A stretch of DNA of 64,000 nt. Source: Haplodiscus bocki (lineage: Eukaryota). Of this stretch, positions 1,955-54,824 are shown piece after piece. Positions within the stretch are counted from its first letter, which is position 1. The number at the start of each line of letters is the position of its first letter. The notes under the pieces are model-generated. The model searched no databases, was not told the origin of the DNA, and saw nothing but the letters and a program-made list of their open reading frames with translations. The position numbers were made by a program, and so were the translations under genes. The stretch spans positions 117,428,001-117,492,000 of the forward strand of contig OZ296649.1 in the NCBI GenBank assembly GCA_965655095.1, in the 5' to 3' direction.

Positions 1955-4900
1955 CTAATCTTCCATTATTTTATATATTTGGCTTTCATTATACAATTCG
2001 CCCAACATGATGAGGTATATTTCATCTTCGTATAACCTTGAGCACAATTTACTCATTTCATCCAAAATACAACTCAGATACATTTTGCAAATATGCAACG
2101 CACCAAGTGTTTCATGTATTAGAGGATGTGATTTGAGGAACCAGACGAGTAGCCAGACACATTTGCGTAAACTTTTCCACACTTCAGTTCTGTCGATTGT
2201 GAGTAAGAAATCGTGCAACATTATACCGTAGTGACAACAAGACTCTACCAGTGGAACCCACGTTCCCGATTGTTTTTCTCGGTGTATGTCGTACACTGAT
2301 TGGACTAGATTCTGACAATGAACTTGGATGATGTTAGCGAATTCTGTCAACATGACAACATTGAATGGTCTTCTCTTGGCATCCATCGCTGGCATGTTGT
2401 AGTCGTTGTAGGGATCAAGCAGCTTCGAGTGCTCCAGAACTTCTTGCGTGTCAAACCATCTGACACTGTGGCAAGAAAGTTGTGTGGAGTCGAAATTGCG
2501 TGCAAGCTCACCTAAATCACTTCAAATTAAGTCTTCCCCTTTTCTATTGGTATTTTGTTTTAGGGAAAAGTGCCATTCACTTGATCGGCAGGTTTTACAT
2601 GGAAAGATCGCACAATTAAATCATAAGTTTCAGGCATTCTATGGAATTTTAGGAAAAACTATATGGTCAGGTAAAATTTTGTACACTAGCCATGCGGTAC
2701 CTTACTTCGACCTGTTCTGCTCAACAAACTGTTCTATTCCTTCAATTTCTGTCAACTATTTCATTATTCTCCGAAGTGATTTTTCATGCCACCTGTAAAT
2801 TTAACTCAGAGCAATTTGAAATAAATATCGGCTGAGTTTTGCTCATAATTGTATCGATTTCATTGAAAAAATTTCAAACAAATTAGAGTATCTTCGAACT
2901 GAAAACATAAAATATTCTTTCAACTCAAAATAAAAAAAATTGAAACTCATTCTAGGGCGAACAAGTGGATTTACCCAAGTGAAAGCAGAGTGTCTTTTGG
3001 AACTGGTCCATCATTGTGTCATAACAGATGTTGGTCATGAAATCTTCGTCACTGAGGTAGCTGGGCACGTCCTTCGGCTCCACTTGGGGCAGTTTTAGGG
3101 TCTTTTTCACTTTGTGCACATTCGTCACAAAACGACGACTGTCCATTACACTCACAATTAATTTTGTCAACACTAAGTTTTGGTAGTTCACGAAGTTAGC
3201 ATCGTTCAGAGTTTTAAAAGGTTGAAAATGTGATAGTCTCGTACCATGTCTTTGCTCGTTGTCAGTAACGGCCGTACTTTCTTGCAGCGAAACCAACGCA
3301 CTAAAATCGAAACTCTTTCCCATATTTTTAACAAACTTTCATATAGGAATACCTTTAAGTATAACTAAAATTACAAGACAAGTGGGGCACCTCTTTTTCG
3401 AGCAGTTTTTTTCTGGTTGCAGAACCAACAATTCAAAATCCCAATTCCAAAATTCAACTTTCTCAGGAAATTAATCTTTTTGGTAGAAATCTTCAATTTG
3501 CAATTGGCTCAAATTCACGTTTTAACTTCGCTTCAGGCAAATACGTACGCAATTCCTGACTAAACTTGATCCCAGAGCATAAAATACGTACTTGTCTAAA
3601 ATATCAACGGAAGACCAGAAAGCTTTCTCGGAGCGGGCGATTGACTTTTCAATATCAGCCGTAGAGCCCAGCTCATCAGTGTCAAGATGAGAATTAGGGC
3701 TTTGGGCCGTCGAGCCGGATTCATCACGTTCATATGGTTCTGACATGAGATATTTCAAGTCTTTCAATTCTTCACTCTTCAGTTTTATCATCGAATCCTT
3801 CAAGTTTGGCTGGTTTCTCTTGATATTTTCAAACCACTTAGTGAGAGATTCTAGACCACTTATTTCGTGAGATTTGTTGCCATTTTTACCTCCACAAATG
3901 ACCTAAAACAAAACTACACAAAATTTATTAGCATAGACGCATCATTGTGCGTTGCGTTTTTAGCCAAAAAATATTATTCACCATGCACCTCAAGAGCAAT
4001 TCTCAAACAGAGCATACCAGTTCATACTTTCTCAAACCTTTTTTGATGATACCAGGCAAAGAGGGTCTTGCAAACACATAATGACTTGACAGTTGAAATC
4101 ACGAAGGACATTTGAAAACATGTTCGGACAAGTGATTGACACTTTTAGAACACAGAGGCGAAAATACGCTTCGCAAACACTTGCGAAACCAATTATCACA
4201 GCGAAGTAACACAAAACGAACTCGGATTCCAATTTAATCTCAGCTGCAGTTATTACTTAATTCGACACAATTCTTATAGGCTACTTCACCAAAAAATATA
4301 GGCTGAAATGGTTGAATCAGCGCTACATGAAGCCAAACTGACAATTAGTCATAGAAACCGAACAACGAAAGTGAAAGCATTATCCATACTTCTTAATTCA
4401 GATCAAGATGCATCACTACAAAAATCAAAAATACGCAATCCAAGCTATTATACAGAAATTCTAGAACGCAAGTGGTTGAAACAGCGCCAAACGGACGCAA
4501 TCCAACAGTAGCCATTGAGAAAAACAGTGTCACGGACAACGCAAGTAACACCATCTTTGATTTTTCGACAATAAGTCAGAATGTTTCGCAATGAAACCAG
4601 AAACAGCAGCTCCAAGAGTCTCTGTAGACCTAAGCTACCAGTGCTATCGAGCCAATATGACTCCTAGTCATTGAAAAACTGTTCGAACGATCAACGCCAG
4701 AAAAACAATTTTTGAAATACAAGACTATATTTTTTGCCTCAAACGAAAAAATAACACCATTTATGCTACTTCGCAGACCCTTCAGGCAGTCAGTGGTTGA
4801 ATGATTGCTGGATTGACCCAATCGTTCAGTCCAGCAATCATTCAACCACTGACTGTCTAAAAAAAACGAGACTCACTGATGACGTCAAAAACTGCAAGTT

Positions 4901-5448
4901 TTGGACAAGATAAAAAGAAACTAACCATGAGCCGTTTCGATACACATTCTTCCTTTCAGTTGGAACGCGTAAAAAGAGACTTCATGCATTTTAAATTTGA
5001 AAAACTTGCTCACAACACACCACGATCCATTCATTTTTCAATTGTTCTTCGGACAAGCCGAACAAAATTACAAACTACCAACTAGAAAATCATGGACATG
5101 GTAGAGAACTGAACCCTCACATTTTAGATTTCCAGACTTAAACTACACATGTCACTTCTCAGCTATCTGTCTAACCTGAAAGTCACAATTTAACTGACGC
5201 ACTTGAATTGAAAAATTCTTTTCCATGGAATATTTGGAGCCTTCAGAAGATTGAGTCAGATCTTGGACCAACTTCTGTAAGGTGTCGAGGTCATGAAACC
5301 CGTCACGACCAAAGCCGATCTCAGCGCTGAATTCAGTATTAGTCATGACACAGTCAACTTCGTCTGCTTTGCTGGAATTGGTCTTGATTACAAATGGAAC
5401 CCCAGCTGCCACCACCATCATTTTATCATTCATTACCTGAAAGACCAT
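1955..5448 (-). CDS. Hypothetical protein, 4 exons, ~483-488 aa, no recognisable family
   Basis: Four ORF-track segments join by canonical GT-AG junctions in consistent phase: 5448 (or ATG 5433)-5176, 3902-3592, 3300-2975, 2511-1955. Total 1467 nt with no internal stop. Confidence 0.75.
4784..4858 (+). repeat. Near-perfect inverted repeat with a 33-bp stem (hairpin)
   Basis: AGGCAGTCAGTGGTTGAATGATTGCTGGATTGA / TCAGTCCAGCAATCATTCAACCACTGACTGTCT with a 9-nt loop. Confidence 0.85.
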
Positions 5449-7182
5449 TTTCGAATATTAAATTCTTGTCTCAACTGACACTCTGCGATTGAATTCTTAA
5501 TTTTTCCCACTTTTTATATTGGTTTCCAGGAATTTTGCAACGCACCAAAAAACTGCACTTCGAAACTCGGGTCAGCTTGATAACAAGCGAATTTCAGGCG
5601 AGCGTAGCGAAAGCGTCTCGAGGCCTCTTTAAACCCCAACCTTGGTAAATTCAGAGGCAATTTTTTCTTCAAAGTTCAATATATCTAATCTACCACTCCT
5701 TAAATTTTGGTTGCGGTCCGACAATTTCTCGGTAGGCATTTTTGCGACCGAAACTTGAAAATCGAGCTATTTTTCTAATAATTTTAGATGTCACGTATTT
5801 TGGCACGTAGACAAAAGCCCCTCAATTTTGCATGCTCTTTACGGGTAGATTCCCATCTAGCACATTCTAAAATCTAGTCGCGGTGTGAAAAGTTTTCGAT
5901 GTGTTTTTTAGCGAAAACGAAACTTCAAAATGAGTCATTCTGAAGAAATTTATTAATTTTGAATCTTATATACTGGGACCTAGGTCTTCAAATTGTTCAC
6001 ATTTTACATAGGCTTAACAAGGAGGCTCCAATAATATCATTTGATGTGCATTCTACAGCTAATTTCCCACTTTAACCGCTTTTGAAAAAGCTATCTTTTT
6101 TCAAAAAACACAAATTTCGTATGTAATTGAGAAATCTCACTATTTCAGTCGCATTCTACGGCAAATTTGCTATAATTTGAGGATAAAGAATTTTCAAATT
6201 CTGGATCTGGTTATTGTCCTGACAACTGGCAAGTAAACTTAATACACCGATTTGAGCGGATGATTTTTTCATATTATAAATATAGATGAAAATAGCAAGT
6301 AGACTACAATACAAAGCATACATGTTGGTTGCGGTCAGAATTTTTTTGGGGTTTTGCGAAAAAATTGAAAATCGATCGATTTGAAAACTTTCAAATCTAA
6401 ATCAGTAGCTTGATATCAAATCTTCTCGGAACCGAGGTTCCAATCAAAATGTGATGGCATGTTTTTCTTGTTTTGTTAGATCTTGCCGCGGCCTAGCCCT
6501 AAGCCCTCACTGCCTATGTTTTAATTTTTGAACGCTTTGATGATTCTCGAAACGTCTTTCCAGGTGATGGTTAAATTGGAGACTTATTAATTATCCATGG
6601 TACGCGCTATCTTGCAGAAAAGTGGCGCCAAAACCTGTTTGTAATGACTAAGGCAGTTTTGCAAGTCTCGGAATTTCACTTTTCCTACTCTGTGATTTGC
6701 ATACTTGATGTGCACACTAACAATTCAGTTCCAAAAATTTAAAATGCCAACATAAAGCCATGTGCTATAATTGAGAAACTTGGGATTAAATTAAATATCT
6801 GGGCAATATCAAAAACACTTGAAACAGAAAAGGTGAATCTCATTTTAAATCTGTTTTAAATACTGTAAATCAACGAGCACAAAATGAAAAGAAACAGCGT
6901 CTTTGGAAGAGAAACTCTGCGCATCTTTGAAAACACAAATAATCTACATTTTGAATGAAACATCAAGAGATAATACTGCGTCAAGCGAAACACTGATCTA
7001 ACGCTGACGTAAACAATTAATTCATCTTCAAAAAGATCGAAGATTGTTTCAAACTGTTCTCAAATACACAAGAAGGAGTCGAGGTTACACGAGCATGCAT
7101 TGATGCTTCAAATGATTTTTTATCGGCCAAATTCTGGGCTGATTAATTTCAACAAATGTGAAGTTTGGGTTCCCGTATTGCA

Positions 7183-26241
<19,059 letters not shown>

Positions 26242-28170
26242 TCTCTCTGAATTAAATTAAGGCTACAATCAACACGAAAACTTGAGAATTACACATCAAA
26301 ATTAGTTTTTAAAAAGACTGCAAGGCCCTTCAGCATCACAAAAACTACTGGTGACAATTTAACTCCGACTTTTCTAACATTTTTCCCGATTTCATCTTTG
26401 TTAGAATAGATAATAACGCTCCTCTGAATCAGAGGTTGTATGAAGCGGATTTCCTGTGATCTCCAGCTACCGCTTTTAAGTCACCCATGAGTGACAGCTC
26501 TCATGAAGGGATGACACAGCGATTGACGTTCCTGTCAAATCGAGACTTTTGAAGCTAAGCTTTGAAGTTTGAAATGGTTAATTTGTCCATTTTCAGTTGC
26601 AGCATTGTGAAGTTTCAAAACGTTGAAATCGCCCTAAACAATTTTTTCAATTCATGGAGGACAAAGATCGTAATTTGACTACGAAAGCAGGACGCCTGCG
26701 GAGTTTTTTTTGAAGATAAATACGGAAAACTTTTTAGCAATCAAACTGCGTTTTCTGTGCTGTGTACTTTCATGTTTTTCTCATACATTTTCTGTGTAAA
26801 TTTCAAACGAGGGCAATTTTTTGGTATTCTCCGCTATTACTTCTATCGAAGTTGCGAGACAAGATATTATCGATGCTAGTCGACCAACGTCCTCAAGTGA
26901 ATAAATAGTTTGCCTTCGAATTGCAGTCAATCATAAATCCTTCTGTTGTACGAATAGGCGTTTCTAATTAGCGTTAGAGGTTTTTGATTTATAGAAAAAG
27001 ATAGCCTCTCCAGGCGGATAGGACTTTACGAATTTTTTCTCAGGCTGTTCAAGATAGAATATTAGTTGAACGGGTAGTGTTTCCAAAAATTCGACATAAA
27101 CGAATGATTCATTGGAACTAGTATATCATCAAAATCTTGGACTGGATTTTCACTAAGATGCTTCATAATATAGACGTACAATGCATCACTTAGTTTGTCC
27201 TTCAAGTTACTTCAATAACTGAAGAGTATCAACTGATTTCAAAACACAGAAGCGAACCAGGGTTATGCAACACTTGCGCCAACGGAATACTAGTGATCAA
27301 ATTGAACAAGTATCACTGATTTTTGAAGGGAATACGGTACTAGGAAAACAGAAAATTAATGAACTCAGTTAATTCTGATAAACTTACAAGTGTGAACTGC
27401 TCTAGCTGTCAATTCTTTATATTTAAAACAAGCGCATACACTGGAAAATAGGCTTCATGATCAAATTCTTGCAACTGGGCGAGAGCGCATGAACAAAATC
27501 TAGGCAACATTAGAATGTAGGCATAAATGCGAGTTGTGAAAGGATCGAGAAAAAGTAAGCATAAGCCTGTGATGAAGCACTTGTTAACACAAGGGTAATA
27601 AGCCGAGTTGACTGTAGTACTTCCTAAAATGACAGTTTTGTGAAATCTTTGCTAACGGCTAAAACTTCCGAACCTCACGAACGTTGATCTTTTTTCAAGT
27701 TTCCACAATTTTTTTTTCGTTTAAGAGGTAGGCGGCATTCTTTTTATTCCACTGTTGTATTCCTAATCAATCACTTATTAGATATAAACTATCATGGAGG
27801 TAGGACTCAGCTGATTAAATAATACCCTTCCTTTCGCCACCGTTTCATTTGACTGAGGTCAAATTCAGTTTTACTTCTAACCGTATTGGTGGATTTCATA
27901 ATTTAAATTCAATCAAATAATTGTCAGCGGGGAAAACATCAAAAAGGAGTATAGATTCAACTTATATTACTCTAGGGTTCCTTATTATCAGAAAACAATT
28001 TTGACTAGCCGGTTAATTATGACGCTCTCGCTTATTAAAAACCCCATAGTAATACGACGAACATTATTCCGGGAAAAGGTCACACCATGCTTTCAAGAAC
28101 TGGCAGAAAGAATTTGTATTTAGATCGATTGAAGGATAAATTACAAACTATGATTTCAAATATCTCATCA

Positions 28171-29642: not shown

Positions 29643-30813
29643 TAGCACCAGTTAGCTTCAAAACGGCCTTTCATAAAATTACAGCAATGCCAACTGAAAC
29701 CATGTGATGTAATTACTTTTTCACGCAGAATAATGCGATTCAAACCTGAGAACGAAGCTGGTTATATTTCCCAAGCACAACCGTTTTTAGTCCACATAAT
29801 GCAAAAAGTGTCTATACCAACAAATTTTTCGACATTGTAAAGCCAAATGTTGCCAACAAAAACTCAATTCCCTACTCCTTCTCAACGAATGTTTTCGGAG
29901 GGCCCGCCACCAGTATTTTTGAGATTTCGAGACATCGATTCCAGTCGTTCTCCGGCAGATAAATTTGTAGATTACGAGGAAAATTGAAGCAAAATCTCGA
30001 AACTATCTTTAGTGCAAAGCATGCGGCTTGTAAGAAAATTCCACTATTTAAGAAAACCCAGTTCACTTCCTATTACTTTACCACTACCGTATCACGTAAA
30101 CTTGTATATGGTTAAAATCTTCAACAATTTCTTGAGAAAATAAGATACGAACAAAATACAAAAACAAAATACGAACGAAACACGTGTTTTATCAAACCTG
30201 TTCTTTGAAAATTTTTCAACGAACTTTTCAGGGAATGGCAATACAATTTCAGTGTTTTGAAATTTCTGGACAAAAACACATAAGAAGCGCGTCTCAAAGA
30301 AAAGATCACTTCTTGTCCTCAAATTCCGATTCTTTCGAGCTGCGGCGACTTGAGAGTTCCAGATGCTTCATCAGCTTGTCATTTTGTTGCAAAATTTTTA
30401 ATCTTAGAATACTTCAATCGTGTACCTGATGGCAAGACACGTCACTTTGTAATGAATCAAACTATTGCCGTTGAGCTCAATCATAATACCATATCAACCA
30501 CTAGGAACGATGGCAAAATTACGAACGCAGCGAATTCTGATTTTATGAAACTACGTTTGCACGCGGTATTTTTAGTCGTTAGCTTCGGAAACACTTCATA
30601 AAAATATAATTTTGCAAGTGTAACCTTTTCTCAATTTTTGACCTAATGAAACAATTTGTGTTTACAAATATGCCATTTCAACTTACTTATTAATATGGAA
30701 AATTGAGTAAAGATGATATGTTGTGATGCAACGCAACTAAATAAATGGATTCTTAGATGCGTCTAAATTATCATCGAGAGGGAGTGATGTCTGCTTTTCT
30801 GTTTGACGGCCGT

Positions 30814-39800: not shown

Positions 39801-40041
39801 GCCGTAAGAAAAACGTGAACGGATCTTTGAAATGTTTTGACAGATTGAAAATTTTATCTACCGATCTGTCGGAGAAGGGTTTGCTAGTGATATCTAATGC
39901 TAGGGAATAAAATGAAAAGCGTGAGCAAACCTGGTCATCTTTCTCTTTGAAATCTTGGCCCTTGTGTCGTCGATTGAATTCGTTGTAGTAAACACACTTC
40001 CCGACGTATAGGTTAAAAATATATAAATTGAAAATCGGCAT
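30814..40041 (-). CDS. TRAPPC1: Trafficking protein particle complex subunit 1 (BET5, sybindin/longin-like), 3 exons, 143 aa
   Basis: Exons 40041-39931 (MPIFNLYIFN..GKCVYYNEFNR), 34997-34794 (MLGIIYSLKDFMQRVSPTD..SYKTNK..HYYETPSGIVFVLTTD) and 30930-30814 (VWVEYVVKNPLCDWKQPITSNLFREKV, not in the ORF track). All junctions are phase 0. Confidence 0.93.
31560..32230 (-). repeat. Inverted copy of the 17250-17790 repeat, in TRAPPC1 intron 2
   Basis: ORF 31683-31901 is homologous to ORF 17428-17682, and the flanking DNA is shared (CCAGTGTGGGTGTCTGAAGGG, GCATTTGCAGGAGTGAGTCA). Confidence 0.7.
32230..33910 (+). repeat. Repeat family with degenerate internal ~200-bp subrepeats (also ~5640-6525 and ~14560-15100); possibly Helentron-associated
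   Basis: Recurrent TTTTGGTTGCGG.CCGA.AATTT and GGCACGTAG motifs. A shared end GTGATGGCA..TTT.CT.GTTT..TCTTG.CGCG..C.TAGC..T.AGCCCT.A.TGCCT.TGTT occurs at 6451-6520 and 33827-33900. Confidence 0.5.
35292..35337 (-). ncRNA. Degenerate hammerhead-like motif (probable PLE terminal-repeat remnant) in TRAPPC1 intron 1
   Basis: Minus strand reads CTGATAA-T-GATG-ctgtcgaa-CATC-GAAA-CACG-TT. Core G8 is replaced by A. Confidence 0.35.
39545..39887 (+). mobile_element. Short non-autonomous Helitron in TRAPPC1 intron 1
   Basis: 5' TCCTATATAAAATG; 3' hairpin CCGA-tctg-TCGG then GTTTGCTAG|T. A homologous interrupted copy lies at ~42570-43882. Confidence 0.55.
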
Positions 40042-40553
40042 AAATTCACTCTTCTAAAAAAATAACCATCCGATTGTTATTTCACAATATTACGCAATCA
40101 AATTATCTGTTGCAGTCTACTTTGAAGCAAACAAAATCTGAAAAAAAAACAGCAGAGGTATATTCAAGCGCATTTGTACCAAAAGCTAGAATGGATATCT
40201 TGGGAGAAAACATTCTTTTTTCCCCATCCCGGTAATTGGAATGTGAGGAACAACAAAAAATTCAGGAACGTCTTCTTAAATAACTATTTGTGTAGGTGCC
40301 TTCATTTTTTGCCGCAAAGTGGTCCCAAGTGCTATTTTATTGCTGTTTGCATGTATAGGATTGAATAAATAGAAACGGTTTTTAGGCCCCTGCTTTAAAC
40401 GTCAGAGTAAACTAATGACGATTGAGAAGATTCCAGAGAGAAAATAATGATTTCAATTTTCAGATAGAACACGATGACGAGACGTTAAACAAAGATATCC
40501 AAAATTAAGTTCAAATCAAAATACATATTTACACATTTAAACCTTTCAAACAT

Positions 40554-40559
40554 TTTATT
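40554..40559 (-). promoter_or_regulatory. Candidate polyadenylation signal (AATAAA) of WDPCP
   Basis: AATAAA ~290 nt after the WDPCP stop, followed by a U/GU-rich tract on the minus strand. Confidence 0.45.
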
Positions 40560-40850
40560 AAAGCAACATAACCTATTTACAATTTTAAAGCTGAATGATA
40601 GAAAAAATCAAGATAGAGAAAAGCTTCGAAGTTTCTGCTCAATAATTCAAAGCAAATGCACGCTGTTTTGGGTTTTATAGTCCAATCCTAGCATGAGAGT
40701 TAAAAATGTTTTGTCTCAGATTTAACTTATTTGAGCTTATAGACTGGTAACTTCGGTTGCAAACATGACCATACTAATTGCTGAAGATTTTATTCGTGTG
40801 CAAAAATTGACGAAACGTCTGACCGATAGGATTTACACTCTACATCAGGC

Positions 40851-43800
40851 TCAAAGAATGCCGAACTGGAATAATTCACCGGGTGAAACTTTCATCGCTT
40901 TTGTAGTATTTGTAGATTTTTGTTCATTTCCATCGGCTGAATCATCATCTTCGCTTTCTTCACTGTCTTCTACGGGCTCATTGATGAGATACATATTTTG
41001 GAATGCCTTTTCCACAACCGGAATTGGTACACTGTGGCCTCTTTGCAATTCTTCCATGTTGGGAATGGGTAAATTGACAGGCATCGCCATATCATGGTTC
41101 ATTTCACTCTCACTTGGAACGGGGATTTTAGGAAAAAGCGCTGACGTCGATTCGGGGTAGTTCTGCTCCTTCAACATGTTCTCTGCGTGCATGCGTGCAA
41201 CATTTGCCAATTCAAACTCGTGTAAATCGAGCGCCATGTGACACACGTCCTGTGAAATTCAAGTCAAGTAACGCTTTTAAAGTGCCTTGTGTACGGCAGG
41301 CCTTTCAGAAACTATAAAACAAATTATCACTTCAGAGCAGAGTGAAACCTTTCCGAGGTCCAACTTTGCTCGAGTAAAAACACGAAAATTTAAGATGAGA
41401 ATTCCTAAGCGCTTACAGTAGTGTTTTGAAAGAATGGAGCTTAAGAGCACTCACTGACGGTATTCAGCCAATAGGATCTCGTTATTTGCTCTCAATTCGC
41501 AATCGCATTGGTTAATATTTCCCAATTTTGGTATTCTCTGTCGCTTTTTTTGAAATATGACTAAGTTAGAAAAAACTTTTTCAAGAAATTATGTACAACA
41601 AAAATTTCCCAGAATTTCTTGAATCCTGTGATATATTTTGATTGAACAAATATTTTGAAATTAAATAGAAATCGCAATTTTTGAAAATACAATTCTTAAA
41701 ACCTATCTCAAAACATGTAACTTCAAAGTTCATTGTACAAAAACAACAATTTTATGCGCAATTTGAAAAAAAATTTGAAAACGAAGTATATTGATGGTTT
41801 CAAGATATTTAGGGGAACGTTTACATGAAAATTGTGTCCGAAAAATTTTTCTCTGAGGCCTTTAAATACCAGAAATACACAAAATTTATTTAAAATTACC
41901 CAAAAATGACCATTTCTAACTTTTGCTGTACTGGTTGCAAAATTTCGAAACATAAACGATTGTAAATCTAAGAAATTTTTCTTCCTACCAAAACTAACCT
42001 CTTCGAATAGTTTCAGAGAAGTTGATGTCTAAAGTTGGTCAATTAATGCATAGGAGCTCCGTTCTCTTAAAACACTACTGTACTCTAGGGTACCTTTTGT
42101 ATCTGTGATAGAAAATAATTATCTTGAGAAACGGTTTCGCATGGATTATCACGATGACACTTGAAATTTTAATTACACTAACAACCTATCCCACAAAACA
42201 CCCTTGTCGTTTTCAACTGAAAAACATGACCATCGACATTGCTCCTTTTTCACTTTTCTTGAAGCCGGGAGAGAAAAATTGTAATACTAAAAAGAAGATA
42301 CCTACGCAGCATGATTGTGACCTTGTTGTAAACAAATGGGAATTTTAATTACTCAACATTTGCTAGGGTTTAAAACTCCATCGAGGCCAATTTTGGAGGA
42401 AATTTCAGTTTATATCGATGACTAATAGAGTAAACACCTTTCCAGCAAGTGATGAAGATGACTAATCGAGTATCTTCCCGGCAAGTTTATCGACAATCCC
42501 GAATAAAATGGAGATAATGATCCGTGTCTCGGCTTTTCAAAACTATAAAAAATTTTCTGCCGTCATTGCCGAAGTCAGCAAGTGAAAATAACTGGCCAAT
42601 AGAAAGCGAATAAAAAAAACTCCGTAGCTGTGTTTCGGCAATAGTGTCAATATGATCATGCCGAATGAAAAAAGCGAGAGAGTTCATCAAGTCATCCGCT
42701 ACATTCACTCACTTGCTTAATTCATACAGCGTGATAGGCGTCAAATTTAGGCGGCGCCCATTTCCGTCTTTTCCGCCTATTTTGATCAAGTCTGCACCTT
42801 TTTTCGTCTCAATACCCTATTTCTGAGATATGTAGCTCATACATGAGAATGATAGCGCGTGTTTCTGAGAAATACAGATAAAACAAAAAATCAGAACATA
42901 TTTCTGAGAGCTACAGCGCACTTTATTCAATTATGCGTCTTGTTTCTCTAAATCGTTACAAGAATTCTGAGAAATAGTTGATTTTAGACTTAAGTATGGC
43001 TGGTCACGCGTCATCGGAGGTGACATTACGTGCAAATATAAATGGTATACACTGTTCGAAAACATTGGGATCTATAAATGATGGCTTTGAAGTTGACTGC
43101 AATGTGCCAGTTCTGCGGATAACGTTCGAAACACATTGAGCAGCACATTAAGATCAAAAGCTAAAAAAAATAAATCGACATTTGATATTTTTTAAACAGG
43201 TTATGGAGAAAATAGAGCCTGTCTGCAGCAGCAGCTATAGTTTGCCAGGAAATGGAGAAACCGGGAATCATTAAAAGTATGGTTTTGGTCAGCATTCAAG
43301 GTTCGTGTTGGGTACCCCAAAGAATTAGAAACGAGCGATTTTAGCGTTGTTAAAGCAAATGTCGAATTCGGGCAATTATCCGAAAAATTAATTGACCTGA
43401 AAATTGGAAATATTATAGCAGAAATACTCTTGAATAAGTTGCAAAGAAATCGGGTCTAACAACTGCAGCAAGAATGGCGAGGGGAGAGGGTGTCAGTGAA
43501 CCTCAGGAAATAACTATCTACTCGTTTGCTCCCTGTACTTCTTGTCAATTGAAAATTTTTTTCCCGATCGTACATTCCTTTTTGCAGGACAAAGTAACAT
43601 AACCGAAGCTACACTGCTGAAATTGTTATTTGTTCAGTATAATATCAAACGTTTTTGAAATTTCATATGAATTTAATTGAATGCTTTGTTTCGCCTGTTT
43701 TTCCGCCTAAAGTGGAAGTTTTCCGCCTAAAACGGCCACCTTTTTTTTAGACATTTTCAGCCCAAATTTGACTTACCTAGTGATAACACTGACTCTGGAA

Positions 43801-46800
43801 CCAAAAAGACGTGAACGGATCTTTAGAATGACTTGGAAAGATTGGAAATTTGATCTGCCAATATGGTAGAATGGTTTGCTAGTTATACAAAGTACGATTC
43901 ACTAACCATACATGAATCGGGATTCGAGACAAAAAGGGACTTTTCCAGGGCCTTTTCAAGCTTCCCAGTTCTCAGCAGCATGTGAATGAATCGTAAAGTA
44001 TAGTTGAATATACGCGGTTCAAATATTTCGATGACAGCAGAAGCGACAAGACCCAGAGACACAGGACTCTGATACAAATCTAACAACTTCTCAATGATTT
44101 CCTCGCTTTCGAAGTCTATCGGTCTACAGAGTCGGATGTCCAAAATTTTCGATATGGAATAAAAGAGCAGTTCATTATGTTCATTCCAGTTCAGCATTTT
44201 CATCAGCTTGATGCAATTTTCATGAGACTTTAGTGAGCGCATTTTGGAAGTTAACAAGTTTTGAATATTATATTTGGGAGTAATAAAATCCAGCATTATA
44301 AATGGACCTCGTGAAACTAATAACAAAATTTTGGTATGAGGTCGAACCGACCAGTTCGCAACTTCCACTAAACTCAGTTCGACCTTGTGACAAACTTCAA
44401 CATTGGTGACTTCTAACGACTGTCGCATGATTTGGTTTATGTTGAAATTTGAATCCTGAAAAGACACTGATTCTTTACAGAGAGCGACATCAATTGTGTT
44501 GCCACCAATATCCAAAACTTGTACTTGGCCTTTGTGACTGAAGAGAAAGACGACCAGACTACTGTAATGCCAACATATGAAGTCGACTGAGAATTTAGAG
44601 GATGATATCATTCTGTTGTGAGCCGCTATGTCAACTATCTCCAACTCTTTGTTAGAAGAAGCTACCGCGCAGTATCTTCCATTTGGAGACCATCTGCAAC
44701 ATTGAATTTCGCCTGAAACCAACTTTAAATTTAAGAAATCCATCTTCATGCTGGACACTTATTTCGGAAATGAACTACAATTCCAATTTTTTTTCAGATC
44801 TTAGTTGCTAAGACATATTAGACAATCTCAAAACATGAAATTCTATTAATAAATGTCGTAATTCGAAAACATTTTTGTCTCAGAACGTTCCAAGAGATAG
44901 TTTTAATCGTTGCATGTATTCGATTTACAGAATTTATACAATTAATCACTCTCTTGATGGAACTAGAGGCAAAAACTGTTTTGCATACGACTGCTGAGGG
45001 AACTTTTTACTAGATAATGGATGGCTTGCCAAGATATTTTCAACAAAAGTTTTTCAAAATTGGACTATCGAAATGAATAGTTTTTTTGAAACTAACAAAC
45101 CGATATCAGTTGAACAATGCTATGAAAAATATTGAAAACTAGAATAACGGCACAGTTACAATCAATCTACATAGAATGGGATTTTGCTTAAACCCTGGAT
45201 GAAAGAAATTGAGAGTACAACCTGTTTTCTGAACAAAATCGCCCAGAACTGAACACGAGTGGCTACCTGACTGTATTGGATAACATATCCATGCCCCAAA
45301 TCGTAGAAAAGGTGCTACGGTATGGCCCTAGACACCCGGTACAACGAAGTTCAATGAACAATATTTCCTTACTAATATCGATATCTTGTTGTCTGATTCC
45401 ATATCGCAGAACGCAGAGGCGAAAACGATCAATCAGATTAACTCCCTGACAGTAAGATATACCAACAAAATGCATGAAACGAGTCAAAACAACGAAATTA
45501 TCAAAGTCAAAAAAAATGGCTCAAAGACAACGATATCTTATCAGTTCCCTACGATAAGGGTACAGGATTTTGTCTGATGAAGAGAGAAACATACATTTCC
45601 GAATGCAACAATTTTCTAGCTCTTCCCCAATACAAGAAAGAAACCAATCTACTTTCAAATGAGGAAAAGTTTAGAGAAGAACTCTTACAAACTAAAAAAT
45701 CGAATTTGATCTCGGAAGAATTTTACACCGAGGTAAAACTAGTGAGTTCCCAACCAGCTAGATTTTATGGTCTAGCTAAAGCTCACAAAAAGAACACCCC
45801 GCTACGGCTAATAGTAGACATGCCAGGATCGACATAGCATGCTTTAGCGGCGGAATTGGGAAACTATCAGAGAAAGTTACCTGAGACTAACATAAACACC
45901 AATGTTAAGAAGGTTCAAGAAACACTGAAGGACCTGAACCTTGCTGATGATAACATCATCAGTCTGGATGTGGTTAGCCTCTTTACCAACGTGTCCGTGG
46001 CACACGCAATAGCATTAGCTACAGAGAAAATGTATGATAGTGATTGTGTGGAACCACCTCCAATGCTGGAGAACACCTTCAAAACGTTACTGGACATGGT
46101 GTCCACTGATATCCTTTTTTCTGACATGGATGGAGCCTTTTATCGACAGACAGACGGAGTCACGATGGGATCGCCGGTAGCTCCTCTGCTGGCTGACATT
46201 TTTTTGGCCCAATATGATGACGAACTGTGATCCAATTCAAAGATATATTTTCGCAATGTAGATGATGTCATCAGGTCACTGATAACTGGTGGAAAACAAA
46301 TCCTCTTGGATTTTGTCAACACTTGTCACCCCAACCTCACACTTACTCTTGAAGAACCAAATTTAGACAGACTACTCTTTTTTGACCTTTCCATGAAGAA
46401 GATCAACAGTAGAATTGTATCGACATGGTATCGGAACAGCATAGACACTGGTGTTATTTTGATATTCAACGCTTTTGTCCCCAAGATTTATTTGCCCGGA
46501 AACGTACCTGGCTTCGTGCATCGTATTTTTATTGCCTGTTCAAACTGGGAAAAATTTAACAGAAGTTGGGCAGAATCAGAAAAGATATTAACTAACAATC
46601 AATATCCTAAGCAATTCATCTCGAAAATACTAAACAGTACCTTCACAAAGATAATTTCTAACGGACAATCGAAAGACCAGTACAACATCTCAAAGAAGAC
46701 CAATCCTAAACTAAAGCATTGGCTATCGTTAGAACACCGGGGAAAATCTTCATAAAATTTTGCGCTCAAACTGAAGAAAATAATGCCTTCCGTGAACGTA

Positions 46801-49800
46801 GTCTTCACTACGAACAAATTGAGAAATGTAGTCTCAAATCTGAAAAGCGCCGTTCCGTTTGCCCTGAAGTCTCGTGTAGTGTATAAAATTGCGTGTCCTA
46901 AATGTCATAGGACCTATATCGGACAAGCAATCCGACACATTTCAATACGAGCAAAGTAACACGCTGCGAAAGGTACCCCAGTCCACACACATTTCAGCGA
47001 ATGTGACTCTGCCGTCTCAATTGAAGAACTAGAATAACGGCACAGTTACAATCAATCTACATAGAATGGGATTTTGCTTAAACCCTGGATGAAAGAAATT
47101 GAGAGTACAACCTGTGTTCTGAACAAAATCGCCCAGAACTGAACACGAGTGGCTACCTGACTGTATTGGATAACATATCCATGCCCCAAATCGTAGAAAA
47201 GGTGCTACGGTATGGCCCTAGACACCCGGTACAACGAAGTTCAATGAACAATATTTCCTTACTAATATCGATATCTTGTTGTCTGATTCCATATCGCAGA
47301 ACGCAGAGGCGAAAACGATCAATCAGATTAACTCCCTGACAGTAAGATATACCAACAAAATGCATGAAACGAGTCAAAACAACGAAATTATCAAAGTCAA
47401 AAAAAATGGCTCAAAGACAACGATATCTTATCAGTTCCCTACGATAAGGGTACAGGATTTTGTCTGATGAAGAGAGAAACATACATTTCCGAATGCAACA
47501 ATTTTCTAGCTCTTCCCCAATACAAGAAAGAAACCAATCTACTTTCAAATGAGGAAAAGTTTAGAGAAGAACTCTTACAAACTAAAAAATCGAATTTGAT
47601 CTCGGAAGAATTTTACACCGAGGTAAAACTAGTGAGTTCCCAACCAGCTAGATTTTATGGTCTAGCTAAAGCTCACAAAAAGAACACCCCGCTACGGCTA
47701 ATAGTAGACATGCCAGGATCGACATAGCATGCTTTAGCGGCGGAATTGGGAAACTATCAGAGAAAGTTACCTGAGACTAACATAAACACCAATGTTAAGA
47801 AGGTTCAAGAAACACTGAAGGACCTGAACCTTGCTGATGATAACATCATCAGTCTGGATGTGGTTAGCCTCTTTACCAACGTGTCCGTGGCACACGCAAT
47901 AGCATTAGCTACAGAGAAAATGTATGATAGTGATTGTGTGGAACCACCTCCAATGCTGGAGAACACCTTCAAAACGTTACTGGACATGGTGTCCACTGAT
48001 ATCCTTTTTTTCTGACATGGATGGAGCCTTTTATCGACAGACAGACGGAGTCACGATGGGATCGCCGGTAGCTCCTCTGCTGGCTGACATTTTTTTGGCC
48101 CAATATGATGACGAACTGTGATCCAATTCAAAGATATATTTTCGCAATGTAGATGATGTCATCAGGTCACTGATAACTGGTGGAAAACAAATCCTCTTGG
48201 ATTTTGTCAACACTTGTCACCCCAACCTCACACTTACTCTTGAAGAACCAAATTTAGACAGACTACTCTTTTTTGACCTTTCCATGAAGAAGATCAACAG
48301 TAGAATTGTATCGACATGGTATCGGAACAGCATAGACACTGGTGTTATTTTGATATTCAACGCTTTTGTCCCCAAGATTTATTTGCCCGGAAACGTACCT
48401 GGCTTCGTGCATCGTATTTTTATTGCCTGTTCAAACTGGGAAAAATTTAACAGAAGTTGGGCAGAATCAGAAAAGATATTAACTAACAATCAATATCCTA
48501 AGCAATTCATCTCGAAAATACTAAACAGTACCTTCACAAAGATAATTTCTAACGGACAATCGAAAGACCAGTACAACATCTCAAAGAAGACCAATCCTAA
48601 ACTAAAGCATTGGCTATCGTTAGAACACCGGGGAAAATCTTCATAAAATTTTGCGCTCAAACTGAAGAAAATAATGCCTTCCGTGAACGTAGTCTTCACT
48701 ACGAACAAATTGAGAAATGTAGTCTCAAATCTGAAAAGCGCCGTTCCGTTTGCCCTGAAGTCTCGTGTAGTGTATAAAATTGCGTGTCCTAAATGTCATA
48801 GGACCTATATCGGACAAGCAATCCGACACATTTCAATACGAGCAAAGTAACACGCTGCGAAAGGTACCCCAGTCCACACACATTTCAGCGAATGTGACTC
48901 TGCCGTCTCAATTGAAGAACTAGAATAACGGCACAGTTACAATCAATCTACATAGAATGGGATTTTGCTTAAACCCTGGATGAAAGAAATTGAGAGTACA
49001 ACCTGTGTTCTGAACAAAATCGCCCAGAACTGAACACGAGTGGCTACCTGACTGTATTGGATAACATATCCATGCCCCAAATCGTAGAAAAGGTGCTACG
49101 GTATGGCCCTAGACACCCGGTACAACGAAGTTCAATGAACAATATTTCCTTACTAATATCGATATCTTGTTGTCTGATTCCATATCGCAGAACGCAGAGG
49201 CGAAAACGATCAATCAGATTAACTCCCTGACAGTAAGATATACCAACAAAATGCATGAAACGAGTCAAAACAACGAAATTATCAAAGTCAAAAAAAATGG
49301 CTCAAAGACAACGATATCTTATCAGTTCCCTACGATAAGGGTACAGGATTTTGTCTGATGAAGAGAGAAACATACATTTCCGAATGCAACAATTTTCTAG
49401 CTCTTCCCCAATACAAGAAAGAAACCAATCTACTTTCAAATGAGGAAAAGTTTAGAGAAGAACTCTTACAAACTAAAAAATCGAATTTGATCTCGGAAGA
49501 ATTTTACACCGAGGTAAAACTAGTGAGTTCCCAACCAGCTAGATTTTATGGTCTAGCTAAAGCTCACAAAAAGAACACCCCGCTACGGCTAATAGTAGAC
49601 ATGCCAGGATCGACATAGCATGCTTTAGCGGCGGAATTGGGAAACTATCAGAGAAAGTTACCTGAGACTAACATAAACACCAATGTTAAGAAGGTTCAAG
49701 AAACACTGAAGGACCTGAACCTTGCTGATGATAACATCATCAGTCTGGATGTGGTTAGCCTCTTTACCAACGTGTCCGTGGCACACGCAATAGCATTAGC

Positions 49801-52800
49801 TACAGAGAAAATGTATGATAGTGATTGTGTGGAACCACCTCCAATGCTGGAGAACACCTTCAAAACGTTACTGGACATGGTGTCCACTGATATCCTTTTT
49901 TTCTGACATGGATGGAGCCTTTTATCGACAGACAGACGGAGTCACGATGGGATCGCCGGTAGCTCCTCTGCTGGCTGACATTTTTTTGGCCCAATATGAT
50001 GACGAACTGTGATCCAATTCAAAGATATATTTTCGCAATGTAGATGATGTCATCAGGTCACTGATAACTGGTGGAAAACAAATCCTCTTGGATTTTGTCA
50101 ACACTTGTCACCCCAACCTCACACTTACTCTTGAAGAACCAAATTTAGACAGACTACTCTTTTTTGACCTTTCCATGAAGAAGATCAACAGTAGAATTGT
50201 ATCGACATGGTATCGGAACAGCATAGACACTGGTGTTATTTTGATATTCAACGCTTTTGTCCCCAAGATTTATTTGCCCGGAAACGTACCTGGCTTCGTG
50301 CATCGTATTTTTATTGCCTGTTCAAACTGGGAAAAATTTAACAGAAGTTGGGCAGAATCAGAAAAGATATTAACTAACAATCAATATCCTAAGCAATTCA
50401 TCTCGAAAATACTAAACAGTACCTTCACAAAGATAATTTCTAACGGACAATCGAAAGACCAGTACAACATCTCAAAGAAGACCAATCCTAAACTAAAGCA
50501 TTGGCTATCGTTAGAACACCGGGGAAAATCTTCATAAAATTTTGCGCTCAAACTGAAGAAAATAATGCCTTCCGTGAACGTAGTCTTCACTACGAACAAA
50601 TTGAGAAATGTAGTCTCAAATCTGAAAAGCGCCGTTCCGTTTGCCCTGAAGTCTCGTGTAGTGTATAAAATTGCGTGTCCTAAATGTCATAGGACCTATA
50701 TCGGACAAGCAATCCGACACATTTCAATACGAGCAAAGTAACACGCTGCGAAAGGTACCCCAGTCCACACACATTTCAGCGAATGTGACTCTGCCGTCTC
50801 AATTGAAGAACTAGAATAACGGCACAGTTACAATCAATCTACATAGAATGGGATTTTGCTTAAACCCTGGATGAAAGAAATTGAGAGTACAACCTGTGTT
50901 CTGAACAAAATCGCCCAGAACTGAACACGAGTGGCTACCTGACTGTATTGGATAACATATCCATGCCCCAAATCGTAGAAAAGGTGCTACGGTATGGCCC
51001 TAGACACCCGGTACAACGAAGTTCAATGAACAATATTTCCTTACTAATATCGATATCTTGTTGTCTGATTCCATATCGCAGAACGCAGAGGCGAAAACGA
51101 TCAATCAGATTAACTCCCTGACAGTAAGATATACCAACAAAATGCATGAAACGAGTCAAAACAACGAAATTATCAAAGTCAAAAAAAATGGCTCAAAGAC
51201 AACGATATCTTATCAGTTCCCTACGATAAGGGTACAGGATTTTGTCTGATGAAGAGAGAAACATACATTTCCGAATGCAACAATTTTCTAGCTCTTCCCC
51301 AATACAAGAAAGAAACCAATCTACTTTCAAATGAGGAAAAGTTTAGAGAAGAACTCTTACAAACTAAAAAATCGAATTTGATCTCGGAAGAATTTTACAC
51401 CGAGGTAAAACTAGTGAGTTCCCAACCAGCTAGATTTTATGGTCTAGCTAAAGCTCACAAAAAGAACACCCCGCTACGGCTAATAGTAGACATGCCAGGA
51501 TCGACATAGCATGCTTTAGCGGCGGAATTGGGAAACTATCAGAGAAAGTTACCTGAGACTAACATAAACACCAATGTTAAGAAGGTTCAAGAAACACTGA
51601 AGGACCTGAACCTTGCTGATGATAACATCATCAGTCTGGATGTGGTTAGCCTCTTTACCAACGTGTCCGTGGCACACGCAATAGCATTAGCTACAGAGAA
51701 AATGTATGATAGTGATTGTGTGGAACCACCTCCAATGCTGGAGAACACCTTCAAAACGTTACTGGACATGGTGTCCACTGATATCCTTTTTTTCTGACAT
51801 GGATGGAGCCTTTTATCGACAGACAGACGGAGTCACGATGGGATCGCCGGTAGCTCCTCTGCTGGCTGACATTTTTTTGGCCCAATATGATGACGAACTG
51901 TGATCCAATTCAAAGATATATTTTCGCAATGTAGATGATGTCATCAGGTCACTGATAACTGGTGGAAAACAAATCCTCTTGGATTTTGTCAACACTTGTC
52001 ACCCCAACCTCACACTTACTCTTGAAGAACCAAATTTAGACAGACTACTCTTTTTTGACCTTTCCATGAAGAAGATCAACAGTAGAATTGTATCGACATG
52101 GTATCGGAACAGCATAGACACTGGTGTTATTTTGATATTCAACGCTTTTGTCCCCAAGATTTATTTGCCCGGAAACGTACCTGGCTTCGTGCATCGTATT
52201 TTTATTGCCTGTTCAAACTGGGAAAAATTTAACAGAAGTTGGGCAGAATCAGAAAAGATATTAACTAACAATCAATATCCTAAGCAATTCATCTCGAAAA
52301 TACTAAACAGTACCTTCACAAAGATAATTTCTAACGGACAATCGAAAGACCAGTACAACATCTCAAAGAAGACCAATCCTAAACTAAAGCATTGGCTATC
52401 GTTAGAACACCGGGGAAAATCTTCATAAAATTTTGCGCTCAAACTGAAGAAAATAATGCCTTCCGTGAACGTAGTCTTCACTACGAACAAATTGAGAAAT
52501 GTAGTCTCAAATCTGAAAAGCGCCGTTCCGTTTGCCCTGAAGTCTCGTGTAGTGTATAAAATTGCGTGTCCTAAATGTCATAGGACCTATATCGGACAAG
52601 CAATCCGACACATTTCAATACGAGCAAAGTAACACGCTGCGAAAGGTACCCCAGTCCACACACATTTCAGCGAATGTGACTCTGCCGTCTCAATTGAAGA
52701 TTTTGAAATTTTAGATGGCGCGAGAAACCAAAAGTTACTATTAACACTGGAAGCTCTAACATTCGGCAACAACAACCGTTACTGAATACGAAAGACGTTT

Positions 52801-54465
52801 CGAAGCCGGTCCTTATCCTATGTCTTCTAAGACCAAGAACACCCCCCCCCCCCAGCCATTACAGTCATATATTTCATATATTTCTAGCAGTATACCTGTT
52901 GTTCAAAGATCCTTTCCGATTGAAAAATTTGAACATTTTAACGTACAAAAATTTGTTGCAAATATGTTAAATGGATGCACTGATGATGATCTGAAATGAT
53001 CGAAAAGCTTTTCCTAAATACATTGTTCCTAATATTTTCTAGATTGAGAGTAGCTTACGAAAAAAATCTATTTTGAAAATTGACTGATAATGACATCAAA
53101 TGTTTATGAAGCAATAATTGGCCCTTCATTTTTTACAATTGAAACAAAACCTAGAAAAAGTGCTCCACTTAAATCAATTTACATATAGTAAGCTGTCGAT
53201 TACGCATTTGATAAAAGAAATTGGGGGTTTTAAGAGAACCATTTTCAAAAAGAATGGAAGGCAGCATTTCATGGCCACCAACTGACCTCTCTAATGCTTG
53301 AAAATGAACAAACCTTTCATTGCAATTGTCAAGTTCTCTGTGCGTTGCACGTCTTCGGCGAACACTAAAAAGGAGGAAAGTATGCATGTTGAGCTAGGGT
53401 ATGAAACTTTTTCTGCCAAATGGAACCCGTTTTGTGTAAAATCAAGGTCATAAATATCGTTTTCCAAGAAATAGGACCCGATGTCAACAGCGATTCCTTT
53501 AGTAGATACTGTAAAGACGACTAAATTGTTTATTGCATTCACTGGATCTAACTGCATCTGTCTGCTGTGATCCATGTATTGAGTCGAGTTAACCCTTACC
53601 GGGTTTTTGCGAGCATACACTACGATTTGGTTTCTGTCAGCATTGGCAGCAATGCGCCACTTCAATTGACGAACATCTACAGACGGTAGATCATAGAAGC
53701 TTACTTGAGGATCGTAATGAGAGAGCTTGATAACTTTGTTTCCAGCGAAGGAGACTGGTAGAGATTTTCCGAAAGATATGATAGATATTTTATTGTAACT
53801 CTGGAGTGTGAATGCGTAAAACTGGTCTGCCAGGACTGCATCCCCAACCAGATCATCTAAGAAATATTTGCTAGACAAAGTTGTATCGATGAAAATAATT
53901 TCAACATCACCTGTTTCGGAGTTGACATATATGTGAACAAAAGTGCGATTGGCGAAAGCCAAAATTACGTATAGCCGAGTTCGCCAGTGCACCGTTACCA
54001 ATCTTTGATTCCGGATCAAACTCTCAAAATCCGGCAACTTCGTTTTCAATCTAAACATACACAAATATTTCTGAAAATGCTTCAACAAAATCGCTGAGAA
54101 AATTTTAAGTTCCATACGATGAGTTAATTGATTTTCCTGAGAATATTTCATTTCTGTGAAAAATGAGAAACTCCAAGAAGAGCTCCTGAAAAACTACCAA
54201 ACCCATTCAAACCAAAATAACTGAAACAACTCAGAGGATGGAAACATTGCAGTTCTTACTTGTCGTTTCTTTTACTGGAGGGCTGAACAAGACATCCCCG
54301 CTCTTGCAGCGAGGAATCTCTGTGGAACGTTAAGGGTGTATCACACGTGTGCAATCGTTTGTCTCGGTAGCACCTGACACATGTACTTAGCTCTACATTC
54401 GGGAGCAATGAATCCTGATGTGACGAACTCCATAAACAACAATTGACAAGGATTCCACTGTCCAT
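40851..54465 (-). CDS. WDPCP: WD repeat-containing planar cell polarity effector (Fritz), 4 exons, ~715 aa
   Basis: Exons 54465-54260, 54050-53314, 44712-43907, 41249-40851 join in phase (2148 nt). Similarity to WDPCP/Fritz: KLKTKLPDFESLIRNQRLVTVHWRT, IFIDTTLSSKY..D.VGDAVL, WD-like CCRWSPNG and WHYSSLVVFLFSHKGQVQVLDIGGN, MNWN-like LNWNEH, RFIHMLLR, C-terminal FQFGIL. Confidence 0.88.
41416..42080. mobile_element. Tc1/mariner-type MITE in WDPCP intron 3
   Basis: TIRs CAGTAGTGTTTTGAAAGAATGGAGCT / AGCTCCGTTCTCTTAAAACACTACTG, flanked by TA on both sides. Confidence 0.75.
42570..43882 (+). mobile_element. Second copy of the short Helitron, split by the 42735-43779 insertion
   Basis: Aligns by eye to 39620-39887; 3' hairpin CTGCCA-ata-TGGTAG then GTTTGCTAG|T. 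The 5' end is uncertain. Confidence 0.5.
42735..43779. mobile_element. Non-autonomous TIR DNA transposon inserted into a Helitron copy
   Basis: Imperfect TIRs TAGGCGTCAAATTTAGGC / GCCCAAATTTGACTTACCTA; flanking duplication GTGA(TA). The paralogous empty site is visible at 39777-39797. Confidence 0.65.
45138..52700 (+). repeat. Tandem array of four near-identical ~1891 bp units (starts 45138, 47028, 48919, 50810)
   Basis: The ORF track repeats with period 1890/1891/1891. The only differences I noticed are a T/G near 45226 and a T6 versus T7 run near 46115, both specific to copy 1. Confidence 0.97.
52972..53020 (+). ncRNA. Minimal type I hammerhead ribozyme-like motif at the 3' end of the Penelope-like element (stem I degenerate)
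   Basis: CTGATGA (52980-86), T, stem II GATC-tgaaat-GATC, GAAA, palindromic GAAAAGCTTTTC stem III. This architecture and position are typical of PLE-associated minimal hammerheads. Stem I pairs at only 2 of 4 positions. Confidence 0.6.
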
Positions 54466-54824
54466 TGACACTATTGAATTAAAGGCTGGTTACGCAGTAT
54501 AAATATACATTCTAACTGAAACGTTATCTACTGCAAAAACAGATATCGTACCATATAACAAACTTCTGGATCTAATTCCACAAAAAAGTGGAATTCTACG
54601 TCACAGCAAGGTGAACTCCTGACTCATGCAACTTTACGTCCAAAAAACGAAAAAAAAGTTCGTTTAAGTTTGCTATTCCTTCCACTGGAGCAAAGGGCCT
54701 TGTGGAACAAGTTCTTTGTACTCGCTTTAGCTTCTGAAGATAGTTCCCTACTATAATTTTCCGCGCTGCAGTTAAACTTCACGGAAAAGTATTGAAAGTC
54801 AACTTAAACTTCAAGGAAAAAAGG

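Follow-up and report, generated by a model that had tools for sequence, protein, structure and literature searches.

Operons resolved by spliced-leader (SL) trans-splicing occur in nematodes, flatworms, tunicates and other animals. A dicistronic gene may also be cis-spliced, as is Adh-Adhr in Drosophila, an animal without trans-splicing. In the flatworm Macrostomum lignano, 15% of the genes have been assigned to operons, with repeat-adjusted gaps of <1 kb (PMC8629364). Acoels, which are not flatworms in the strict sense, hold a disputed, early-branching place among bilaterians, and the first report of SL trans-splicing in them dates from 2022. For the acoel Symsagittifera roscoffensis, 30.2% of the genes were found to be SL trans-spliced; SL sites served there for separating gene models, and operons and dicistronic RNAs go undescribed (PMC9911081). 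Our literature search found no paper describing operons in Xenacoelomorpha, acoel trans-splicing itself being the only report found. Here, we analyse a stretch of 64,000 nt from the acoel worm Haplodiscus bocki (contig OZ296649.1, positions 117,428,001 to 117,492,000), referred to below as the window, and ask whether two of its genes, TRAPPC1 and NANP, form an operon. The window belongs to a 1.5-Gb assembly, has a G+C content of 34-43% and contains no N.

The original prediction for this DNA placed five functionally unrelated minus-strand genes (WDPCP, TRAPPC1, NANP, ZFR and an unrecognised fifth gene) in a single trans-spliced operon. Our analysis supports a smaller unit. The window holds a same-strand cluster, in the order WDPCP, TRAPPC1, NANP, ZFR, most likely with a dicistronic TRAPPC1-NANP unit inside it, and WDPCP, ZFR and a doubtful chain of open reading frames (ORFs) may or may not belong to that unit. 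We put the probability that TRAPPC1 and NANP are co-transcribed as one unit in this species at roughly 0.6, a reading that combines the genomic sequence of the host with RNA of its relatives.

How does this locus compare with the described systems? As in the operons of M. lignano (PMC8629364) and Caenorhabditis elegans, unrelated housekeeping genes share a strand, the organism uses SL trans-splicing, an acceptor is found shortly before the downstream ATG and, in RNA from relatives, one molecule spans two cistrons with a leader on the 5' gene; the cluster also shares with M. lignano spacers that are inflated by repeats. In contrast to both, the intercistronic spacer is bounded here by a consensus donor and an acceptor and is skipped or absent in relatives' RNA, and the leader is known on the upstream gene, TRAPPC1, alone (in one relative). 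The distance between cistrons is ~100 nt in C. elegans, whereas the unique genomic spacer measures 1.17 kb here and the RNA spacers of two relatives 125 and 185 nt. The TRAPPC1-NANP pair resembles Drosophila Adh-Adhr in having two complete ORFs on one mature RNA and an intergenic stretch that is apparently spliced, from 3' UTR to 5' UTR (untranslated regions), but differs in that a leader could use the same acceptor here, so that the dicistronic RNA may be one of two products. With S. roscoffensis the host shares the leader, less its last base, and the SL RNA genes of the host have a GTAAGT donor; the study of that species differs from ours in reporting the fraction of trans-spliced genes, without operons or dicistronic RNAs (PMC9911081).

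Results

Does any RNA join the two genes? A word search with TRAPPC1 exon 2, followed by a look-up of the encoding contigs, returned full-length TRAPPC1 proteins from two relatives, with 89% and 77% identity across the exon, and in both of these acoels the two genes stand as complete ORFs on one cis-spliced RNA. In the first relative (species B; L011 and L012, from two Logan runs), TRAPPC1 of 144 aa is followed by a 125-nt spacer and by NANP of 256 aa on the same strand; in the second (species C; L013-L016, from two Logan runs and two JGI records), the order and strand are the same and the spacer has 185 nt. Aligned to the window, the contigs follow its exons one by one and lack all four coding introns; nucleotide identity between the exons of L011/L012 and those of the window is 78-88%, and the architecture of the pair is conserved. 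These matches underlie the gene models: TRAPPC1 was modelled on L011-L016, with an open frame and Pfam Sybindin on the homologues, and NANP on L011-L016 together with a contig of a third species (L025), its frame likewise checked. Throughout, gene models were translated as joined exons for the frame checks, and homology searches were run exon by exon. The NANP product is a HAD hydrolase by Pfam, with NANP/HDHD4 as the closest solved structures (E ~1e-27), and its last exon is 86% identical to NANP of species B. Beyond the NANP stop, L011 remains collinear with the window up to its 3' end, 95 nt downstream.

All RNA evidence used here consists of assembled contigs of related species, the four runs found for the host containing DNA contigs. 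L011 and L012 are identical over 974 nt. L013 equals L014, and L015 and L016 differ at a single base, so that these four records amount to about two datasets, each seen via two pipelines, with a difference of 0.8% between the pairs. The dicistronic form thus occurs in six records, corresponding to about four independent datasets, in two species and through more than one assembly pipeline. In L026, a genomic contig that matches species B, TRAPPC1 exon 2 is flanked by an intron on either side, which identifies L011 as spliced RNA and not as intron-free DNA of a compact genome. In the genome of the window, L011 matches this locus only (~80-88%), and species B is for that reason another species and not the source of a paralogue. 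Because the 125- and 185-nt spacers contain no leader sequence, the join between TRAPPC1 and NANP is not a leader-mediated assembly chimera. RNA that spans two cistrons is the type of evidence by which polycistronic transcription is defined, though here it comes from relatives and from assemblies.

In the window, 1171 nt separate the TRAPPC1 stop from the NANP ATG. The spacer of L011 aligns to two blocks of this gap, 30816-30687 and 29693-29640, with a score of 105.5 against 43 +/- 6 for shuffled sequences (~10 SD), and the alignment requires that 993 nt (30686-29694) be skipped: the stretch that two conserved anchors enclose measures 24 nt in L011 and 23 nt plus the 993 in the window. The skipped segment starts with GTAAGT at 30686, the sole GTRAGT of the spacer, and ends at the NANP acceptor that the original prediction had noted, 29694. 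A GTAAGT and a comparable acceptor would both fall within 5 nt of the break points with a chance of ~3e-4. The segment is single-copy in the genome and recurs in DNA contigs from each of the four runs, which rules out both a transposon and an assembly error; a recent transposon insertion was rejected on the single-copy ground. The spacer of species C did not align to the window above the level of shuffled sequences. Taken together, the 993 nt probably behave as an intron of a TRAPPC1-NANP precursor, which splicing would remove, and we infer that in the relatives' RNA cis-splicing connects the acceptor corresponding to 29694 with a donor within the 3' UTR of TRAPPC1. The caution attached to the original prediction, namely that the acceptors might be ordinary cis-splicing sites, is in effect borne out for NANP by this RNA.

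Over 25600-31500, the DNA contigs of the four host runs confirm the assembly and expose a high-copy repeat. Sequence variation was also seen. Differences between the window and the run contigs lie at 25936, 26208, 26310, 28701, 30790 and 30799 (12-nt and 6-nt deletions, a 1-nt insertion and three substitutions), each present in some runs and absent from others; those at 30790 and 30799 fall in the conserved TRAPPC1 3' UTR segment.

A leader marks the 5' end of TRAPPC1 in species B. L011 opens with the 9 final nt of the leader, after which comes sequence homologous to the window from 40137 onward, so that the probable SL acceptor of TRAPPC1 lies, by homology, at 40138 and thus 84 nt upstream of the site at 40054 proposed originally. 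The sequence at 40138 has nine T followed by CAG, with 14 pyrimidines among 16 positions, a quality expected by chance at 0.02-0.03. The 40054 motif falls inside the orthologous 5' UTR: the 5' UTR of L011 reads through it, and the homologous position is not a YAG in species B.

Does the host itself possess a leader to splice? The published 32-nt leader of S. roscoffensis has ~1,640 copies in the genome at <=3 mismatches, compared with 0 for a reversed-pattern control, and through this leader the status of the host as an acoel with SL trans-splicing was checked. The 3' part of the leader followed by GTAAGT has at least 673 matches genome-wide, on both strands, and the 100 matches listed form one tandem array on a single contig and strand, with units of ~1.7-3.6 kb (Table 1). 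In the one array unit that was read, the leader exon has 31 nt, one (the last) base less than published, ends in AAATAG and is directly followed by GTAAGT. The genome carries bona fide SL RNA genes, as follows from the direct junction of leader exon and donor in a tandem array. A search of the whole genome with the Rfam nematode SL1 model gave no match, and its controls were silent too, which renders this result uninformative; Rfam and tRNA scans of the window gave no match.

Exact copies of the 32-nt leader were considered as SL RNA genes and rejected, since the ten that were sampled continue in diverse non-GT sequence. Among the exact copies at ten places on contig C1 (L001-L010), four have a common downstream sequence, another two have a second one in common, and nested partial leaders occur in some. 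They resemble retrocopies, derived either from leader-carrying mRNAs or from a retroelement that is trans-spliced, and the genome may contain up to ~1,000 of them.

Are TRAPPC1 and NANP nevertheless independent genes? Each gene of the cluster could have its own promoter in the spacer before it, the acceptors being chance motifs or outron sites of monocistronic SL genes, and the relatives' contigs could reflect rare read-through or a tighter arrangement that spacer expansion has abolished here. We regard this as unlikely, while giving it appreciable weight. Spacers of 0.8-1.9 kb are roomy enough for promoters, the 993 nt are unique sequence without a counterpart in relatives' RNA, assembly can in general favour minor read-through paths, and in S. 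roscoffensis 30% of the genes are SL trans-spliced in a report without operons (PMC9911081). On the other hand, the dicistronic form recurs across the datasets, species and pipelines listed above. Furthermore, a consensus donor and an acceptor stand where collinearity breaks off, the UTR segments on either side of the 993 nt are conserved, and a signal scan of the 400 nt that follow the stop of TRAPPC1 found neither AATAAA nor ATTAAA, i.e. no poly(A) signal for the upstream gene.

Several observations weigh against co-transcription in the host. The dicistronic RNA comes from relatives, the host runs contributing DNA-type contigs at this locus, and a transcript-derived protein identical to the window's exons was not found in the protein collection. 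In De Bruijn assemblies (Minia-type), short tips like those formed by a leader or a poly(A) tail are clipped off, and for this reason a read-through path could be assembled even if it were a minor precursor; likewise, no junction between SL and NANP was found in the relatives' contigs, where clipped tips could not have shown one. The NANP contig of the third species, L025, begins with a long 5' UTR of its own (258 nt of non-coding sequence) and has no TRAPPC1. The pair is not kept in all acoels, because in Convolutriloba macropyga NANP does not lie within 10 kb downstream of TRAPPC1. Finally, the genomic spacer is about nine times as long as the RNA spacer of the relatives, and the excess might be a spliced intron or a lineage-specific expansion that holds a NANP promoter. 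Cluster look-ups with ten exon ORFs returned only the ORFs of the host's own ENA assembly.

Table 1. Features of the window and the SL RNA gene array of the host genome
Feature	Coordinates	Strand	Details
WDPCP/Fritz gene	40851..54465	-	ATG 54465, stop 40853-40851; Pfam Frtz, E 9e-23 and 1e-16
WDPCP exons	54151-53291; 44758-43883; about 41246-40851	-	two large exons and the last exon
WDPCP acceptor-like GTTTCAG	54516..54522	-	50 nt before ATG; weak candidate site
WDPCP-TRAPPC1 spacer	40042..40850	-	809 nt, single-copy in the genome
TRAPPC1 probable SL acceptor TTTTTTTTTCAG	40138..40149	-	first exon base 40137; 5' UTR 96 nt
TRAPPC1 acceptor noted earlier TTTTTTTAG	40054..40062	-	12 nt before ATG
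TRAPPC1 coding gene, 143 aa	30814..40041	-	exons 40041-39931, 34997-34794, 30930-30814
TRAPPC1 3' UTR segment	30687..30813	-	conserved with species B spacer
993-nt intercistronic segment	29694..30686	-	GTAAGT start, TTTCAG end; probably intron or outron
NANP, 256 aa	28171..29693	-	5' UTR 29693-29643; coding exons 29642-29491, 29149-28843, 28482-28171
NANP-ZFR spacer	26242..28170	-	1929 nt, with ~370-nt high-copy repeat at 27236-27604
ZFR acceptor-like TTAATTCAG	G at 26247	-	5 nt before ATG; candidate
ZFR gene	7183..26241	-	ATG 26241, stop 7185-7183; Pfam DZF_N/DZF_C
ZFR-ORF chain spacer	5449..7182	-	1734 nt; repeat fragments ~5678-6301 (~620 nt)
Unrecognised ORF chain	1955..5448	-	ORFs 5448-5152, 3323-2952, 2395-1955 (98, 123, 146 codons)
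SL RNA gene tandem array (loci L058-L069)	C9:72473748-72686933 and beyond	one strand for all listed matches	leader 3' part + GTAAGT

Beyond the pair, the outline of the original prediction holds in several respects. WDPCP, TRAPPC1, NANP and ZFR are real genes on the minus strand, as identified by Pfam Frtz, Sybindin, HAD (with the NANP/HDHD4 structures) and DZF, and no recognisable plus-strand gene was found between them. The four stop-to-ATG gaps measure 809, 1171, 1929 and 1734 nt as claimed, and the introns of the cluster are indeed expanded, from 3.9 to ~11 kb, and bear repeats. All five acceptor-like motifs are present, with the G of AG at 54516, 40054, 29694, 26247 and 5437. As bare motifs they do not exceed chance, however: when every YAG is counted that lies at most 55 nt upstream of an ATG, on either strand of the window, and has pyrimidines at 8 or more of the 16 positions before it, such a site is found near 62-66% of random ATGs. 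Sites as good as that of WDPCP occur at a rate of 0.64 and sites as good as that of NANP at 0.40; the three sites within 13 nt of their ATG have p ~0.06-0.12 each and were picked post hoc.

The WDPCP gene is 48% identical to an annotated Fritz gene of C. macropyga. Its acceptor-like site, with 8 pyrimidines among the 16 upstream positions, is weak, and an upstream ATG at 54510 stands between it and the start codon. In C. macropyga, which belongs to a second acoel family (L023, OZ077313.1:41850790-41876359), WDPCP and TRAPPC1 have the same order and strand across a gap of 6.2 kb; the 10 kb downstream of TRAPPC1 contain neither NANP nor ZFR, and the UTRs were too diverged for acceptors or a donor to be placed. 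Two repeat structures accompany the gene. In the large WDPCP intron, 45138-52700 is a four-fold tandem array of 1891 nt in which ORFs recur every 1891 nt, and 58830-62078, upstream of WDPCP, carries diverged direct repeats with a period of ~1.4 kb, 67-86% identity and palindromic GC-rich cores, which gave no Pfam match above threshold.

The ZFR gene matches ZFR transcripts of other animals exon by exon, including the conserved M-x-NYGYGY start. A metagenome scan with the first zinc-finger exon of ZFR returned 31 ZFR loci, which come from distant animals and are 33-45% identical wherever the match exceeded the zinc-finger motif; none of them has NANP upstream or a leader. Inside the 11-kb ZFR intron, two plus-strand ORFs of 379 and 171 aa at 19223-20973 probably belong to a transposon. 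The repeat in the NANP-ZFR spacer has more than 40 scored copies elsewhere, many of them 70-82% identical, and a k-mer depth of 13,000-22,000 against ~40 around it; it gave no tRNA or Rfam match. A consensus GTAAGT lies within this repeat, on the minus strand at ~27386.

The fifth gene of the original prediction found little support. No Pfam family was detected in the ORF chain, and a word search, a search of 1.8 billion proteins and two atlas searches returned no relative apart from its own assembly; the one distant match (P0011) is a bacterial repeat protein and was discarded as spurious. Two of its ORFs scored 1343 and 1284 in language-model recognition, below the mark of 2300 that 91 of 100 known-family proteins and 9 of 100 shuffled ones reach, and the AlphaFold single-sequence model is helical and of low confidence (pLDDT 54). 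The ORFs are single-copy, with repeats between them. The acceptor proposed at 5437, where TCTTTCAG is followed by GTAATG, can equally be read as a splice donor. That the chain is a real protein gene is doubtful, in our view, with odds clearly against it.

Could the entire cluster form one operon, as proposed? Such an operon would have one promoter upstream of 54540, a precursor of ~53 kb and SL trans-splicing before each ATG. All its members share a strand, and gaps of 0.8-1.9 kb contrast with introns of 4-11 kb; the genome has an SL system; one internal junction, TRAPPC1-NANP, is co-transcribed in relatives; the WDPCP-TRAPPC1 order and strand are kept in C. macropyga; and in the 9.5 kb upstream of WDPCP we found no recognisable gene. 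Moreover, the operon spacers of M. lignano are repeat-inflated as well, and repeat-adjusted gaps of <1 kb are counted there as operonic (PMC8629364). Spacing is nevertheless constrained in the two upstream gaps only, because the other two hold repeats: without its repeat the NANP-ZFR gap still has ~1.5 kb (~1560 nt), and the ZFR-ORF chain gap, whose repeat fragments have many 70-86% identical copies genome-wide, retains ~1110 nt.

Further evidence speaks against so large a unit. We found RNA across the TRAPPC1-NANP junction in relatives, but none that spans WDPCP-TRAPPC1, NANP-ZFR or ZFR-ORF chain, so that the proposed SL-resolved polycistron is supported in part, by the SL system and by this one junction. 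The leader on TRAPPC1 of L011 fits a promoter of its own and one further upstream alike and does not discriminate between the two. The poly(A) signal scan found AATAAA 57 nt past the WDPCP stop, with 650 nt still to go to the TRAPPC1 acceptor, and in C. macropyga the gap between these genes is wide and NANP is not nearby. The lack of relatives and the low protein-likeness of the fifth gene, together with the abundance of loose acceptor motifs near random ATGs, also tell against it, as does the prior of 1 in 16 for five neighbours on the same strand. We consider the five-gene operon very improbable. A unit that reaches back to WDPCP or on to ZFR seems distinctly unlikely, yet less so than the complete five-gene chain.

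Discussion

Based on the RNA of the relatives and on the architecture of the locus, we favour a TRAPPC1-NANP unit that would be processed as follows. RNA polymerase II would read through TRAPPC1 into NANP, and TRAPPC1 would receive the leader by trans-splicing at 40138, its strong acceptor. Splicing would then remove the 993 nt from the GTAAGT donor, which lies 127 nt past the stop of TRAPPC1, to the TTTCAG acceptor, which precedes the ATG of NANP by 51 nt. If this removal takes place in cis, a mature dicistronic mRNA would result, the form found in the relatives; if the leader is instead trans-spliced at the same acceptor, a monocistronic NANP mRNA could be released, a step for which we argue by inference only. 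Such a dual role has a basis in nematodes, where an upstream cis donor turns a trans-splice acceptor into a cis acceptor, as the work of Conrad et al. 1993 is summarised in PMC8629364. Since a cis donor can convert an acceptor in this way, the site at 29694 could give rise to either product, the dicistronic mRNA in cis or a NANP mRNA when it receives the leader.

The same finding, in the form in which PMC8629364 cites it, can also be read in favour of a simpler outcome, in which TRAPPC1 and NANP are conjoined and always cis-spliced into a stable bicistronic mRNA. The acceptor would then never take a leader, and NANP would be translated by reinitiation or leaky scanning. This reading agrees with the cis-spliced dicistronic RNA being the sole form seen. 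However, the ATG in the NANP 5' UTR segment of the window, and likewise the ATG in the spacer of L011, would hamper translation of the second cistron, and the organism resolves many of its 5' ends with the leader. The missing internal leaders say little in this respect, as assemblers would clip leader tips. We judge a purely bicistronic mRNA to be rather unlikely.

The favoured TRAPPC1-NANP unit would be an operon of a known type within an SL system, possibly with a new twist, the acceptor shared between cis- and trans-splicing. We tentatively suggest, as a possibility that falls well short of even odds, that acoels have operons of an unusual build. In these, the spacer would be a real intron with its donor in the 3' UTR of the upstream gene, and its acceptor would serve both cis-splicing, giving the dicistronic mRNA, and leader trans-splicing, giving the monocistronic one, so that the choice between them would set the amount of NANP relative to TRAPPC1. 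This build would be conserved over at least three species and would provide the first evidence of an operon in Xenacoelomorpha, possibly as a three- or four-gene unit that starts at WDPCP.

With a two-gene RNA in two acoels, the question of whether acoels have operons gains a concrete locus with exact junctions. For annotation, this means that transcriptome assemblies of acoels will fuse such gene pairs. If it is true, the shared acceptor would be a natural case of the choice that the spliceosome makes between a cis donor and a leader, and it would also illustrate the growth of operon spacers in a genome of 1.5 Gb that is rich in repeats.

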